Part shown: positions 18,737 to 29,272 of the stretch, piece by piece
Position numbering within the stretch: the stretch's first letter is position 1
Layout: every line of letters begins with the position of its first letter
Assembly (NCBI GenBank): GCA_004764695.1
Contig: SMSO01000005.1
Coordinates: 496,001-560,000 of the forward strand
DNA length: 64,000 nucleotides
Direction: 5' to 3'
Origin: Schizochytrium sp. TIO01
Lineage: Eukaryota; Protista; Bigyra: Labyrinthulomycetes
The notes under the pieces: generated by a model
Told to the model about the DNA's origin: nothing
Database searches by the model: none
Seen by the model: the letters and a program-made list of their open reading frames with translations, nothing else
Translations under genes and position numbers: made by a program

Positions 18737-21460
18737 CTTCCCAGCGGCCAAGAAAGTCCAAGCGAGCGAGTGATCGATCCTTCAATTTAGAGTATTAGCG
18801 TTTTGCTTTGCTTTCCTTATTTGGCTCTTTATTTCCATCTTAGTTAACAGTTCTCACCACTCCTATGGTTTATGTTATACACAGGTTATCAATGCTAATG
18901 CACACTCTTTGTTTGCTACAGCCAGCTTGAATTATATTTGTTTATTTATCCTCTTCGCAATTTGGCCTACGTTTTCATTTCAGGTATGCATGCCAGCGTA
19001 AACATGGTCTCATGCTGAGTAGGCATCCAATTCTATCTTTTCAAACAACTGACCTAAGACACCACGCTAGTGTTAGTGTTGACCATCAGAAATTTCACAT
19101 GCTTGACGCACCACCGTTTTGCCATACCGTGGGACCTAGTACCACGATGGTTGTAAAAGTAATTTAAAAATCTATAGATGTACTACTACTAGGTAGGTAC
19201 CTAAATATTCTTAAAGAAAGAAGAATGTTTAACTCTGCGTTTTCTGCTTTTAGTACACATCGAATCCTAATGGTACTTATATACTGCTATAAAAATGGCC
19301 GCCTTGGGGTATGGGTAAAATAAAATACGGCTCGAATATCAAAGTTTTAATCATGGGTCCCACGCTCGTTCGCGCAGGGTTCATTCACGCATTCACGCAT
19401 GGTGTATGGGTGAGGTCTTTTGGAGATGGGTGCAGTAGAAGCATAGTACAATGGGGGGTTTCAACTTTGGCTTGGTGACTCTTATACCTTGAGTTTACTA
19501 GGTGCTTGCTTGCCTGGAAAGAGGGAGCGGATATTCATGTCCAAAACCGTGCGCGTGCGCACCATTTGCTGTTTTCTTTTTGTGAAAACCAAAAGTTCCT
19601 TTTCCTGTTGTAAATGAGAGTGTGTGCGTATTAGGCCTGGTACTAGCATTGGAGCCCTAATCGATTGGTAGAGTGTTAGAAGGACTCACCACCACGACCA
19701 ACCTTTTGTTCTTCAAGTCTGCGAGCAAAGATGAGAAAGTCAAATTGTACAGCACGTGCTGCACACTATTATGTAATGAGACTTTGCATCTTTGAATCGC
19801 TTGCTGATAACTTTCTCTGCATTTGACGACATACTAAATTAAATTTTTTGTTGTTAGTAGATCAACATCGGAGAGAAATGCCAAGCCAACATTTTGCATA
19901 AATGTGGAGGCCCTAAGAACTTGTCTTTCCTCTGATGGCTTCCACCCTTTGCATCTTAGTACTATAAGGAGGGTGCGTAGGAGATTCCTTTTCTAAAAGC
20001 TCGAACCAAAACCACCTTAATGGAGGGATAGCATCAACTTGAATTTTTAAAGCATAATGATTGTCGTGATATACTAAATAACCCTGTTCAAACCAAGCTT
20101 TGGCTTCTGATCACCAAACTGTAGAAATGTCTTACTTTAAAGAAGAGCATCATGGTACTTTGTTAATAGCACTGTGCATTTTATTGCACCGCAAGAAGCT
20201 TATCTCAACAGATACGACCCAATTATTGAATTCCATTACTGATCTGCAAACTCAACACCAGTCCTTTCTTAAATGCCAATAGATAATTCCCCCTTGGTGT
20301 TCCCAACGTCGTTTGCTTGCTTGTGCTGACATCACGATGCTTGTAGTCTGAAAACTGTAATGGTCATCTTCGAAATCACTGAGTTGTCCAGTTCTGCTGC
20401 TACATTTTCGTACTCGTCACTTTTGAGTGCCACTTAATCCCTGCATTTATCACAGCAGCGATAAGCCCACTCCGGATGACCTCCACGCCGCAAGAGCCCA
20501 AAAGCTAGTCAGATGCTGCGTCAACAACTTCTTGAACGAAGCGCTCCACAGGTATTCTATGCTTCCGCATAACTGCTCGCTAGCGATTCCCAGCGCTGCT
20601 GGCGCGTCCAGCCAAGCTATTCAATAAGAACAGCTCTAGGCCTCCCCACCTTTCTCACCATTAGCGAAAAAGAACGCGTTCTATACGCCCTCCAGTGAAT
20701 CGTACCACTACCATCACGCCTATTAATAACACTACTGCTGCTACTGCTACCAGTCCTGCTAATTCTCGCAGAACTGTAGAACCGCCAAGTCCCAGTCATT
20801 CCGCTACGCGATGGTCTTTGACGCGGCTGTCGCTTCAGAGACGAGTTAGGGCTGCCCTCTCAAGGCAGGCTTTGCCCTTCAAACCGCAGGAGCCGCGCCT
20901 TTGCAGAAGCCGTGGGCGTCTCGGTTTGCTGTAGGACCAGTAGTAGACTGTGCAAGAGCCCGGAGAACTGGCGGCGCAGTGCTAAGGTTTAAGTTAAGAG
21001 GGCACTATAGGCCCCTCCGTTGACGCTTCATAGCTGTCAGGGAAGAACTAGAATTGAAAGAAAGGAAAATAACTGGCTATTCGAAAGACAGTGAGCGTTT
21101 ACTTGCGTTACTATAGAGATTAGGAATCCTTTACTATAGACTTTTGAAAGCCCCGGAGTGAGTTATTCTGTCAAAAGTACCTACTAATACCGCCTAGTTA
21201 TTGGCTAGTTTTCAAGAAGTGGGAAAGGAAAGGAACAAGAAGCAAACCTCAAACTGCATTCAAACAACCACCCAGTCTGTCGATCGAACTGTTCGTTGGC
21301 TGGCTGCCGGCGACCGCTCGAGAGACCTGCCCGGCGCGGTTGGCTGTGAGGATCCTCCCGGACCGTCTCCACTCAGCTCCGTGAGCGAGTCTTTGTTTTA
21401 GTCTTCGAACAGACGACAGGTCTTGGCTGAGACCGTAGTTGGTTGGCTGTGGCTGTCACG

Positions 21461-24984: not shown

Positions 24985-25839
24985 CTTGCGTCAGTGTAGG
25001 ATACTGCTATTCCAGATCTGCTTCTGCCCCTCTTTTGCTCTTTCTTCCCCAGATCACTGTAATACATAGTACCTAGATACCCGTAGTAGACCTACTACAA
25101 CCATGTTTTTCCTTAATTCCCTTTCCTTTTCAGATACGGCATTTTATAAAACTCAAACAAAAGTAGAAGGATCGATAAGAGCAGCCTTTGTAGGTAGGTT
25201 CTACTAGCTAGAGTGTTTCCGCGTTTGTCTCGAGGTCTTTTACCTCTAATCCGGAGACATCTACCTACTTAAGTAGTTTGTCCTTTCCAAAGTTAACTTA
25301 GTTGCAAGTATAGCTCCTAATTAGAGAATGCTATAAATATCATATTGCATATTCTGCCTATATGAAGGTGATTGTATGGCAGTAGGACTGATGTTTTGCA
25401 ATTGAAGCTGTAAATGAAAACATAGCCTCGCCTCAATATTAGGTAGGTAGGGTACCTAGGTTTCATTGAAAGCGAATTCGAAGGGGCGCAGCTATTGAGC
25501 GATAGAAATTCGCTTTGTTATACATACGTAGATAGGTATTTTCAGCAACGAAACAAAAATTCGCTTAGGCTTTATCTATAAATTTGGCCGTCATATTGCA
25601 TCCGAAAGATTTGAACTCTGCTAATTTACAAATCAATGTTTGTCTCTGGTACGCCCCATGCCCATACAAATATGAATAGCTCAAAGCCCAAACCATTCAC
25701 TCACCCAGGTCTTTCGATCTCAGCATAATACACACCTTTTTACCTACGAAAATGTAAGAGCTTATATAAGCTCCAAATGGTAGTGTGACTATTCCATATA
25801 AATAAAATAATACATCGTAATTGTTTTGGTCTTTGTTAA

Positions 25840-26600
25840 GAAGTGGAGGCTGAGTAAGAAACTGGAATGGCCAAGGAACCACCGAGCTCCCGACACTACA
25901 ACTGACGCAAACCCTCAATCGAAATAATCAAGAACCTTGTTAAGAGGCTTGGCGCCTCAGCAGGTGCTCGTTGAGTGCCCCTAGAGAGGCAATTGCATAT
26001 ACGCAAGTGACGACGTTGAGGGCGCCTATGAGCGCGGTTTATTCCTGCGGAAGCGAGCTACGCAGCACTGACTGTGCCATTTTCTATACCATAACATCCT
26101 CCGCCAAGCAAAAAGGGAATTTCAAATGCCAGATTGGTATGCCTATCCAGATGCCTCCGCTTGTTTACAAAGGCATCGGCAAAGCAGTCAACTTCAAAGG
26201 GCCAGGCTTCCGTGCCCTACTGGACTACCGAGATTTGCTCTTTGACTTTGTGAAAACAACGGTGTTATCCTTTTGCCTAAACTTGAACACTCAACAAGAT
26301 AACAAACAAGATGGACCAAAATCAAGACTGCTCGAATGATGTCTCGTTCGTTCGTTGGCTTCCGCCAAGAGCTCATAAATAGAGCCGAGCTTTTCCTCTG
26401 CCGGTGGTGTAAACTGGTTGTTTTCCGAGATGATATGATTGATTGCACTTCAAAACCATGCAATGCATGTAACCATCCACGACAAACTCTGAGCATTCAA
26501 GGTTTTCAAATGACTTTAAAATTGCAAACACGTAGCCGATCGTGATGTCCACGCCGCCAGAGGCATCCTTTTGCAGTACCTACCCAAGAACATGATTTAA
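25840..26600 (+). pseudogene. Fanzor2 (eukaryotic TnpB homolog) pseudogene with stops, frameshifts and deletions
   Basis: The frame from 26171 reads RHRQSSQLQRARL..RFAL*LCENNGVILLPKLE..KTARMMSRSFVGFRQELINRAELFLCRWCKLVVF..CTSKPCNACNH. After a frameshift it reads KVFK*L*NCKHVADRDVHAARGILLQYL..* (stop 26598-26600). These match the Fanzor2 RuvC-II region (WLCxNYxVILLPxFE), the zinc finger (TSKxCxxC..CxxC) and RuvC-III (DRDxNAARNIL). Weaker N-terminal remnants lie near 25860-26030. Confidence 0.88.
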
Positions 26601-26730
26601 GAATTGTCTTTGAGAAAAACTCGCGATTGGGCCTTAGTCCCACTTTGTCACCATAGGAAGCGCAAGTTTTGCAAATTTTATTGACGTGTGCGTACTCTTT
26701 CTATAGAAGTACGTCTTCGACGCACTAAGG
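26601..26730 (+). ncRNA. Putative Fanzor omegaRNA scaffold (guide predicted to begin at ~26731)
   Basis: Directly downstream of the Fanzor stop. Hairpin TGGG-CCTTAGT-CCCA (26628-26642). Long stem ATAGGAAG-CGCA...TGCG-(TACT)-CTTTCTAT (26653-26704). Hairpin CGTC-TTC-GACG (26712-26722). The loop CCTTAGT is the exact reverse complement of ACTAAGG (26724-26730), forming a pseudoknot. Confidence 0.65.
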
Positions 26731-26959
26731 TAAGTACCTAAGTAAGTACCTGCCTACTAGTTAGTTAGGTAGGTGTAGCAATACTTGCTTGCACGCGACC
26801 TTCTTTTTATTTATTTTAAAAACAATTGTTTATTTCAATTAAAAGGTTTTATTTCAAAGCTGAGATGAGAACAATTCAAAGCTTACAAGGGCTTTTGGGC
26901 TCGAATGTGCGAGAAAGACCTGTGGAGAGCCTGCGGCAGAACCTGAGCGCCTGGACCAC

Positions 26960-29272
26960 ATGAAGACATGCGGGGGCGGGGCCGGGCGGCAAGGAGAACC
27001 CTCTGCTGCCCTGGAATCTGCCTTTGATGAGGTTTTGCCGCCTGATGACTTGTGCGCTTGGGAGAACCTTGACGCTTGGTCACTGATGCATGGCCTGCAA
27101 GAGCGTCTTCAGCACGGCCGAGCCCAGACGCTCTGGGGCCACTCCACACTACTATGGATGAATTCTGAGGGAGATGGAGATGGACAACACCAGGACAAAC
27201 AACAGAAACTTGATGATTGTCCAAAATCTGCCAAGCCTGACCACATATCTGCAAGGTGGATTCACGAAGCTCTTGAGCACTCAAACACCAATGTACCGTA
27301 TCAATTCGTCTTTGTAGGACTTGATCATACAACAACGACATCAAGGAGGAAACATGTCCTTAACCAAGTTTTGGCGAAGTGTGCGCAAAGCGGGAAGACA
27401 TGTGCTCAGCGCGTAGATAAACTCCGTCAGAACTTCCGTATGGCCGAGATACTAATTCAAGCTCTGCGTCTCCCGGAAGCATCTACAGGCCTCCCATTAG
27501 TGCGAAAGTTACATCTGTATTACAAGAAAACCCTCACGGTACATGCTATGTCTGAAGTCCCAGTTCTGGATCTATCACGAATGTGGGAGTTTGATCTTTT
27601 CGTTCAGCTTGCTGGACCTAAACGTGCCAAAAACACGTACGTGCGCTGTAACTATGATGATACCCAAGACCCAATTGGTGCAGAACTCCGTTTTGCGAAG
27701 AGCTTGGAGGCTTTGCAATATTTTGGACTCAATGAGGAAGAAATTACTTCCTTATTACGTATTTTCCGAGCTGTTCTTGAACTTGGTCATATCGGCTTGC
27801 AAGAATCCCATGAAGAAGCACAAACCCATGTAGAAACTGTAAGTCACCTGTTGGGAACAACCAACCTACTTCAAACCACTCTTTTTCACCCATCTTCTTG
27901 GTCAAAGAATACACATCGCTCATCAGTGGAGCGTGAAACTTTGCTTACCCGACACTCGAGGTTCGCCCGGGACGCATTGGCAGAGTCCCTTTTTGATGCA
28001 GCATTCCGTTGGATTTTAATGCGTGTCAACCGCACTCTGATGCAGGATAGCCGGGAGAGCACTGGTACGCTAGTCCCTTCTAGCACAATGAGCTTTGTTG
28101 AGATGCCAACTCTCGCCTCTATGCAACAATTTGCAACTGGGCTGCAGACTTCAAAAACTCATGCGGTTGAAGATTTGGATAGTCTTTTGCGAAATACCAC
28201 TTGCGAGACTGTACATTTACTATTGCTAAAATCATTGCGCCAAGCAGAGGTTAAAACTCAATGCCTTCTAAATGAAGTTCGAGATACAAACTTCATTCGT
28301 GCACAAGAGGCCGTAGAAAATATCCAGCACATTATTGAAATACTTGAGCACCGAGAGCAAGCACTAAAAATTCGCCATGTCATTTCACAAAGTGTCTCTG
28401 TTGAGCACTTTTGCAATACTGCTGTTTATCATGTCAAGTCAATGGAGCCCATTGATTCTGCCGGTCTTATGCGCGGACTAGCACAAACAAGCCGGAACTT
28501 ATTTCTTTGCCGCATTCTAGATGCCTGGCCTTGCAATGCTCGCTCAAGTACAATTAAAAGACATCGGATGGGTATGGAGAGCTTAATTTCTCCACTAAGA
28601 GAAGGACGTCTTCACTTTGTTGTCTGTCTGTCAAAGACACTACAGGAAAGTCTTACTGCCTTCGGGTGTATACAACTCGCTCAGGTACGCGCAGAGGCAT
28701 GTTTCCCCTTGCGAAAACCTTGGGATCTAATTATAGACATTTTGCCGGATGAAGCTCGAGCTCGATTAGGAGTGTGCGTCGATCGCAACAAAATTCGGGC
28801 AATGCTTGAGGAATACTTGCATGACCTTGATCCTGATCTCCCATTTCATGTTGGCAAACAGTTTGTCTACTTTGTGCATGAGTCATGGAACACCTTCCTC
28901 CGTGCTATTGAATTATCGCTTGCAGACAATAGGTCGCTTCAAAGCGCCGGAGGCAGCGAAATAGGGTTGGGGAACTCGTATTGGAACGAAGATGAGGAGC
29001 CCATTGAGGAGGAGCCGTCACCGCAGGAACGTCACATTGTGCACAAATATGGGCAAAATGCATTTGAAAGAAAGACCTCTTCTCACAAGCAACATTCCTT
29101 AGGCGCGGTTGACTCAGTCGAAGTGGTCGAACTTTCCAACGAACAATTTGGTCAAGTTCGAGACACAGTCAAAATTAAGCATGATAGCCTGAATTCCACT
29201 GTCCAAGAGCAAGACCAGACGCTGAAGAGCACCTTGAGGTTTGATGAATTCTTGAGTGTAACGTGGCTTTGA
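26960..29272 (+). CDS. Highly divergent myosin motor-like domain with degenerate P-loop (5' part of a myosin-IQ-PH gene)
   Basis: Myosin-head landmarks in the expected order: DDLCAWENLD..LMHGLQERL..TLWG..LLWMN; PDHI; ALQYFGLNEEEITSLLRIFRAVLELGHI; ARDALAESLFDAAFRWILMRVNRTL; VEHFCNTAVYHV; LHFVVCL; FPLRKPW; FHVGKQFVYF. The GESGAGKT position reads GLDHTTTT. Confidence 0.78.
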   Translation: MKTCGGGAGRQGEPSAALESAFDEVLPPDDLCAWENLDAWSLMHGLQERLQHGRAQTLWGHSTLLWMNSEGDGDGQHQDKQQKLDDCPKSAKPDHISARWIHEALEHSNTNVPYQFVFVGLDHTTTTSRRKHVLNQVLAKCAQSGKTCAQRVDKLRQNFRMAEILIQALRLPEASTGLPLVRKLHLYYKKTLTVHAMSEVPVLDLSRMWEFDLFVQLAGPKRAKNTYVRCNYDDTQDPIGAELRFAKSLEALQYFGLNEEEITSLLRIFRAVLELGHIGLQESHEEAQTHVETVSHLLGTTNLLQTTLFHPSSWSKNTHRSSVERETLLTRHSRFARDALAESLFDAAFRWILMRVNRTLMQDSRESTGTLVPSSTMSFVEMPTLASMQQFATGLQTSKTHAVEDLDSLLRNTTCETVHLLLLKSLRQAEVKTQCLLNEVRDTNFIRAQEAVENIQHIIEILEHREQALKIRHVISQSVSVEHFCNTAVYHVKSMEPIDSAGLMRGLAQTSRNLFLCRILDAWPCNARSSTIKRHRMGMESLISPLREGRLHFVVCLSKTLQESLTAFGCIQLAQVRAEACFPLRKPWDLIIDILPDEARARLGVCVDRNKIRAMLEEYLHDLDPDLPFHVGKQFVYFVHESWNTFLRAIELSLADNRSLQSAGGSEIGLGNSYWNEDEEPIEEEPSPQERHIVHKYGQNAFERKTSSHKQHSLGAVDSVEVVELSNEQFGQVRDTVKIKHDSLNSTVQEQDQTLKSTLRFDEFLSVTWL

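Follow-up and report, generated by a model that had tools for sequence, protein, structure and literature searches.

A decayed mini-Fanzor2 relic, rather than an intact guide RNA, in Schizochytrium sp. TIO01

Introduction

A stretch of DNA immediately downstream of a degenerate Fanzor gene in Schizochytrium sp. TIO01 raises the question of whether a guide RNA has stayed intact behind a dead nuclease. The window analyzed here is 64,000 nt of contig SMSO01000005.1, and unprefixed coordinates refer to it. The first-pass annotation proposed that an intact-looking omegaRNA scaffold runs from the Fanzor stop codon to position 26730, where a pseudoknot closes its 3' end, that the adjoining host DNA (26731-26750) serves as guide, and that the RNA might still be made and used in trans by a Fanzor encoded elsewhere. 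A stand-alone guide locus of this kind, had it been intact, would have deserved attention; the evidence, however, speaks against it. The locus is an ordinary decayed relic, not an intact guide RNA.

A pseudoknot between five guide-flanking nucleotides and an apical loop is conserved in the RNAs of TnpB, IS607 TnpB, and Fanzor2 and is lost in Fanzor1 (PMC10711439). In the ApmFz2 structure (PDB 9B0L) the pseudoknot involves positions -4 to 0 (PMC11832414), whereas Fanzor1 RNAs have been reported without one (PMC11832414, PMC10711439).

The locus is an old, internally deleted mini copy

Pieces of a TnpB/Fanzor C terminus lie upstream of the stretch, spread over three reading frames (...ILLPKLEHS... 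and ...ADRDVHAARGILLQYL...), confirming that a degraded Fanzor2-type gene precedes it. Positions 26540-26800, used as a query against the organism's own genome (64 Mb, 37 contigs), recovered at least 147 candidates, and a 20-nt tail motif had 165 matches genome-wide versus 15 for the reversed control. The element tail is present at 142-165 loci, the central ORF segment at only 25-27. Paralogues were alignable without a break over 25741/57-26681 at 66-86% identity, and the alignments placed the left end of the window copy at about 25741-25749 and its right end at 26681-26688. When mapped on a full-length element of the same genome (L061:2161-4359), the window copy consisted of nt 54-511 fused straight to nt 1728-2093. 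Its parts are as follows.

25741-26688, + strand: mini Fanzor2 copy of ~940 bp without an ORF (paralogue alignment; mapping on L061:2161-4359)
26041-26226, + strand: N-terminal coding remnant, residues ~29-93 of the intact 618-aa protein, with an in-frame stop inside (tblastn of the intact protein)
26226-26237, no strand assigned: junction of a ~1.2-kb internal deletion, residues ~94-496 gone, common to other minis (mapping)
26231-26600, + strand: C-terminal RuvC/zinc-ribbon coding remnant, residues 497-618 (tblastn; motif ...ADRDVHAARGILL... as in intact copies)

Across the deletion junction, the window copy can be aligned unbroken with eleven other old copies. Because of these junction alignments and the rarity of the central segment, the window copy is considered a member of an old mini sub-family rather than a full gene that decayed in place. 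In the C-terminal remnant, the frame shifts once, near 26472, and several in-frame stop codons precede the natural one (TAA, 26598-26600); this remnant retains just the part of the protein that carries the E and the last D of the RuvC triad. Thus, the ORF is dead, as had been proposed, but stops and frameshifts are not the main reason; the chief defect is the missing ~1.2 kb. Taken together, the region from ~25741 to 26688 is very probably a dead, ancient, non-autonomous mini-Fanzor2 derivative from which no functional guide RNA is expected.

More than 100 old mini copies of ~940 bp, ~73% identical to one another, were found, indicating that a nuclease-less derivative was once amplified to that number. 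No young minis were found in this genome alongside the ~20 young full-length elements. Bacterial PATE-like miniature elements of the IS200/IS605 type lack an ORF and keep the element ends and the guide RNA region. The thraustochytrid minis resemble them in being short and non-autonomous, with both ends and the omegaRNA region, and in numbering more than 100 copies without a nuclease. They differ in being eukaryotic and derived from Fanzor2; moreover, all are old (~73% mutual identity), and conservation of their RNA module does not exceed that of the remainder.

Full-length Fanzor2 elements in the same genome

The genome carries 18-21 young copies (about 20; loci L031-L047 and L061-L068) that share 89-100% identity in the central ORF segment; for 19 of them the value is at least 92%. 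Their open frames are 661-665 aa long (618 aa from the first Met) and end ...ADRDVHAARGILLRYLSKDMI. Comparison of eight young copies defined the 2.2-kb element L061:2161-4359. In it, 233 nt precede the ATG of the ORF (L061:2394-4247), and a tail of 109 nt follows that closes with ...CTAAGAG; past this point the eight copies have entirely different flanks. The Fanzor ORF is alone in this element: no serine-recombinase TnpA of the kind that marks IS607-type transposons was found inside it, and neither terminal inverted repeats nor a target duplication was evident by eye. Three young copies (L064, L065, and L068) have an extra ~300-nt insert near the 5' end. At another locus, L013 (G000:C4:724462-727615), one strand carries both a young-type tail (L013:2504-2614) and, ~1 kb away, the tail of an old mini copy (L013:1484-1597).

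The intact protein matches PF07282, and its closest solved relative is the mimivirus Fanzor2 ApmFz2 (PDB 9B0L, E = 2e-18). A PDB sequence search with the intact protein returned neither 8GKH nor any other Fanzor1 chain at E <= 0.01. D416, E564, and D601 are invariant in an alignment of 18 sequences (17 relatives). As judged from its sequence, the protein of the parent element is a Fanzor2, with a TnpB-like RuvC D-E-D triad and a zinc ribbon. Metagenomes and giant-virus contigs contain many relatives of the protein, with identities of 25-47%, and a 92% identical MMETSP transcript indicates that an intact Fanzor2 is transcribed in a related strain. A housekeeping protein encoded nearby has 71% identity to its counterpart in the thraustochytrid Hondaea fermentalgiana. 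The young family of ~20 copies is possible material for studying the role of a Fanzor2 in its own host.

The DNA to the left of the element is not random, at the window copy (25738-25749), at L061-L068, and at old copies. Old copies have ..CAGTACCTATG ahead of AAAACGT at the left flank, and five of the eight young copies have CAGT(A/C) 2-4 nt ahead of the first element base. This bias could mean that the element prefers certain targets or a TAM-like motif; alternatively, its tip may be variable.

Intact tails share a pseudoknotted architecture

Young tails begin with a 12-bp hairpin (H1), followed by H2, in which GGAG/CTCC or GGG/CCC encloses the loop UCUUAG, and by H3, GCAA-GUU-UUGC lengthened by A-U pairs. 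They end ...UAGUUUAAAAU-CUAAG-AG, in which CUAAG complements the H2 loop and lies 2 nt before the right end. Young tails fold with z = -3.8 and -5.7 and an old complete tail with z = -3.6; none of 200 shuffles folded as well.

Distant relatives were used to look for covariation, because the decayed copies within the genome cannot give any. A covariance model (R1) was made from 26 within-genome tails and re-trained with five distant hits (R2). R2 matched 14 metagenomic and 8 giant-virus loci; with two exceptions, these matches are on the coding strand, where a Fanzor ORF ends or no more than ~80 nt from that end. Covariance models cannot represent pseudoknots, and therefore the alignment was not fitted to the pseudoknot. 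The within-genome alignment, from which RNAalifold recovered H1 and H3 only, was not used for the pseudoknot statistics because MAFFT set H2 in differing registers between sub-families.

In the 14 metagenomic tails, all nine H1 pairs change on both sides, as do four of the five core pseudoknot pairs. The pseudoknot pairings encountered are CUUAG:CUAAG, CCUAG:CUAGG, CUUGA:UCAAG, CUUGG:CCAAG, CUCGA:UCGAG, CUUAC:GUAAG, and CCUAC:GUAGG. The pseudoknot-inclusive structure left 86% of cells paired versus 61% when shuffled, a level that 0 of 500 shuffles reached, and the pairing signal collapsed when the 3' partners were slid by 1-3 columns. N-G follows the pseudoknot 3' strand in the aligned tails. 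Six distinct giant-virus and metagenomic tails had no aligned partner; in four (L150, L207, L157, and L144) a candidate partner followed by N-G was found by hand farther downstream, and these partners were left out of the statistics. In giant-virus tails the model set the 3' ends wrongly. Between H2 and the pseudoknot 3' strand, distant relatives have 60 to about 200 nt. The layout seen across distant relatives L070-L226 (alignments A5 and A6) is H1, H2, a variable stem, and the pseudoknot strand followed by N-G.

These compensatory changes show that the family pseudoknot, from the H2 loop to the scaffold 3' end, is real in this clade. The pseudoknot proposed in the first-pass annotation therefore stands for the family but not for the window copy, in which the 3' strand is gone. 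Likewise, the compensatory changes that it had anticipated are present in H1 and in the family pseudoknot of distant relatives, but ACTAAGG, the partner that it had proposed for the loop, is present in no paralogue.

As in known right-end RNAs of Fanzor2 (ApmFz2; PMC10711439) and IS607 TnpB (PMC10711439), the region encoding the RNA starts where the nuclease ORF ends and reaches the right end of the element, with stem-loops and an apical loop that forms a pseudoknot with ~5 nt just upstream of the guide. The window copy departs from this scheme: without the H1 5' arm and the pseudoknot 3' strand it is a relic. The post-stop tail of the family is ~110 nt, compared with the 205-nt scaffold of ApmFz2. 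The Fanzor1 omegaRNA (SpuFz1, PDB 8GKH) is similarly a right-end RNA that guides a eukaryotic TnpB-like nuclease; unlike it, the family studied here has a pseudoknot. Neither the window region nor the intact tails match anything relevant in Rfam 15. Thus, H1, H2, H3, and the pseudoknot provide a working omegaRNA template for this clade that is absent from Rfam, and the template tells live from dead tails in thraustochytrids, metagenomes, and giant-virus contigs.

The window tail lacks the H1 5' arm and the terminal module

Compared with this template, the tail of the window copy and its surroundings contain the following features.

26598-26688, + strand: damaged omegaRNA-coding tail (R1 59 bits versus 105-124 bits for intact tails)
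26615-26626, + strand: orphan 3' arm of H1, the ~15-nt 5' arm being deleted (alignments)
26628-26642, + strand: H2, TGGG/CCCA with loop CCTTAGT, the retained pseudoknot 5' strand (letters, alignment)
26662-26672, + strand: H3, GCAA-GTT-TTGC, retained (alignment, fold)
26682-26688, + strand: ambiguous boundary, with a terminal sequence unique in the genome (alignments, model R1)
26689-26845, no strand assigned: single-copy intergenic flank 5' of the next gene, containing CGTC-TTC-GACG (26712-26722), ACTAAGG (26724-26730), and the proposed guide (26731-26750)

The window tail aligns with the paralogue tails between the stop codon and the right end (R1, E = 1e-11). The identification of the stretch as the omegaRNA-coding right end of the element thus holds for 26598-26681/8 but not beyond, where the sequence is non-element flank. 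In the R1 alignment the H1 block is reduced from 25 to 12 nt, and the end at 26688 assumes a 10-nt gap in the terminal module. Intact tails have a 9- to 12-bp H1 right after the stop codon; the window copy does not, and its H1 5'-arm deletion is common to its closest paralogues, L002 (86%) and L003 (84%), on the same contig. The spacer between H2 and H3 is kept. The 5-nt pseudoknot 3' strand that should lie 2 nt before the right end is absent, with homology stopping at 26681-26688. The scaffold cannot be called intact-looking: it has lost the H1 5' arm by deletion and, along with the terminal module, the true CUAAG strand.

The predicted folds agree with this assessment. Compared with dinucleotide shuffles, the window sequence gave z = -0.46 for 26601-26750, +0.29 for 26588-26730, and -0.29 for 26653-26704, with 52-117 of 200 shuffles matching the fold in each case; another version of the window tail gave z = +1.0. 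The window tail thus has z of about 0, versus -3.6 to -5.7 for intact tails. The "long bulged stem" that had been drawn at 26653-26704 is one of these folds, and it runs across the boundary between element and flank.

A cognate nuclease is lacking in cis, where residues ~94-496 are gone. Eighteen to 21 intact ORFs could serve in trans, but their own tails are different: the window tail differs from the young intact tails by ~30% and has another architecture.

Three minis without the H1 5' arm (G000:C4:468797, C4:522540, which is the window copy, and C4:667635) are located within 200 kb on one contig and have different flanks. Because the flanks differ, either a mini without H1 was still copied or the three arose by local events.

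The sequence beyond 26681-26688 is probably host DNA

More than 40 scored paralogues, among the 142-165 tail copies, all end their alignment at window positions 26681-26688. The scaffold end proposed at 26730 lies 42-49 nt past this point, and copies that had been predicted to align up to ...AGG at 26730 all stop before it. Compared with 11 full-length minis, the window copy is 72% identical in its 5' portion, 76% over the ORF remnant, and 81% over the tail; beyond 26682 the figure drops to 24%, the random level. The flank (26682-26960) is single-copy, with only a self-match in the genome. Thus, the CGTC hairpin, ACTAAGG, and the proposed guide are wholly outside the element.

The boundary itself can be read in two ways. 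The flank may start at 26682, or ACGTG (26684-26688) may be the remainder of a right end ...AAGTG after a 10-nt deletion; the canonical CTAAG strand is absent under either reading. After ...AAATTTTAT (ending at 26681) the window has TGACGTGTGCG..., and its nearest relatives have AGGTTA.ATTCTAAGTG. A pattern search for a sub-family sharing the window's ending (...TTTTATTGACGTG) found the window only. One copy from a different sub-lineage, L025, has TTGACGTG at the same place, by homology or by chance.

The letters on which the first-pass annotation was based are correct. The hairpin TGGG (26628-26631)/CCCA (26639-26642) encloses the loop CCTTAGT (26632-26638), CGTC-TTC-GACG is present at 26712-26722, and ACTAAGG (26724-26730) is a perfect 7-nt complement of the loop. 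For a pre-specified 7-mer, a perfect reverse complement is found within +20 to +130 nt at ~1% of window positions, and many loops were open to choice when this pairing was picked out. The core CTAAG occurs ~0.84 times per kb per strand, or about 8% per 100 nt, and ACTAAGG borders a TAAG/TACC simple tract (26731-26750) in which the rate of CTAAG is higher. Furthermore, ACTAAGG is followed by T-A, so that G-T rather than N-G comes after the core CTAAG. The complementarity of ACTAAGG and the loop is a coincidence, helped by the adjoining tract. Nor does the tract look like a host-derived guide: it is common simple sequence, and the proposed guide TAAGTACCTAAGTAAGTACC has 103 genomic matches at three or fewer mismatches, mostly in (TAAG)n-like tracts.

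It is conceivable, though quite unlikely, that the original CTAAG survives at 26725-26729, displaced when a break at the right end, caused by attempted excision or RNA-guided cutting, was sealed by end joining with a 43-nt filler (26682-26723). Nothing else in the genome is homologous to the 43 nt, which can fold into a modest hairpin by themselves (z = -1.97), and CTAAG followed by G/T resembles the terminal CTAAG-TG of the family. However, a single deletion is a more parsimonious history than this one, in which ~10 nt (AGGTTAAATT) must be lost and 43 nt gained. The GT after CTAAG is not the N-G of all relatives, and the expected frequency of CTAAG given above rises further beside a TAAG tract.

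The next gene downstream encodes a 770-aa protein. Its mRNA-like contigs begin at 26846-26900, so that its 5' end lies 60-110 nt ahead of the ATG (26960). These contig starts and the single-copy nature of the region would be consistent with 26682-26850 being a promoter or 5' leader of this gene whose hairpins are regulatory and unrelated to the transposon. However, the region has indels in a second strain (described below), its structure is not significant except for the weak z = -1.97 of 26686-26726, and nothing ties the hairpins to regulation. We consider this reading extremely improbable.

Constraint and transcription

The conclusion that the locus is a relic also fits what is seen in other sequence data. 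Contigs of four public runs were compared over 25000-28000. One of them, run X1, carries another strain label, differs by ~1% substituted letters and a few indels, and covers the whole stretch. Its orthologue has a 5-nt deletion at 26657, beside H3, a 13-nt deletion at 26711 that removes the CGTC hairpin, and a C>T change at 26685. In X1 no indel was found in the adjacent 1 kb of coding DNA.

The claim that the RNA region was better kept than the ORF is not borne out among the other minis, in which conservation is much alike for the tail (76%) and the ORF remnant (74%). This similarity indicates neutral decay.

Runs X4, X8, and X13 are probably RNA, a guess made because their contigs cover genes only. 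No contig of these three runs covered 26616-26817, although ordinary libraries such as these lose small RNAs. Low-depth contigs were present over 26137-26582. The RNA-like runs also contain short, very deep contig pieces that match only 26526-26574 and have loose ends at 26574, among them a 3,062-nt contig in X4 with a depth of 433. Because this deep contig continues from 26526-26574 into other sequence, other Fanzor-related copies appear to be transcribed. The suggestion that the RNA of the window copy is still made and usable in trans is unsupported, with no sign of constraint or transcription.

These results bear on the possibility that the scaffold does reach 26730, with a 43-nt insert between H3 and a displaced ACTAAGG, and functions as a stand-alone guide RNA used in trans. 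The 7-bp complement is perfect and pairs with the correct loop, that of the family's own pseudoknot, and its chance frequency is only ~1% for a pre-specified 7-mer. Distant relatives differ in how far the pseudoknot strand lies from H2, so that geometry alone would allow a displaced partner. Intact Fanzor2 genes are available in the genome and, as the MMETSP transcript (92%) indicates, transcribed in a related strain. Certain omegaRNA stem-loops are reported to tolerate truncation with their activity retained (PMC11832414), and contigs from ordinary RNA-seq could miss a rare small RNA, the RNA status of X4, X8, and X13 itself being guessed. However, 26682-26730 is found in no paralogue, and the H1 5' arm is gone, despite the covariation of H1 throughout the relatives. 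Shuffled sequences fold just as well, and the guide is of low complexity. The orthologue of the other strain has lost 13 nt just before ACTAAGG and 5 nt beside H3, and the region is uncovered by contigs in the three RNA-like runs. The tail is also ~30% removed, with another architecture, from the young copies that must supply the protein. A displaced but working scaffold is therefore very unlikely.

A bolder version of the same idea is that the ~940-bp minis formerly served as eukaryotic loci for guides alone, relying on Fanzor2 in trans, and that the window copy, having lost its own end, rebuilt a 7-bp pseudoknot from its flank and still loads. If this were true, the window copy would load into the nuclease with a new guide. 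We give this proposal similarly little credence.

Proposed history of the window copy

The relic may be explained by the following history. A Fanzor2 derivative would have kept its left end, ~65 codons of the N-terminal region, ~120 codons at the end of the ORF, and the right end that encodes the omegaRNA. A copy of this derivative would have landed at the site already without a working nuclease gene and then decayed neutrally. The H1 5' arm of its omegaRNA module was presumably lost before insertion, because the loss is common to the two closest paralogues. The last ~12-19 nt of the right end, together with the pseudoknot 3' strand, would have been lost as well, probably by a local deletion after insertion. 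Everything from 26682/26689 on would then be unique host intergenic DNA.

Simple-sequence motifs in the window

The motif GTACCTA, which is part of the proposed guide, recurs in the window as had been noted, with 15 occurrences versus 2.8 expected from shuffles. It was considered as a target motif and rejected; it is enriched, but its contexts are heterogeneous and without a longer consensus. Its sites include 19194-19203, 25069, 25452, 26576, and 26734. Tracts of TAGG, TAAG, and TACC are common in the intergenic DNA of this genome.
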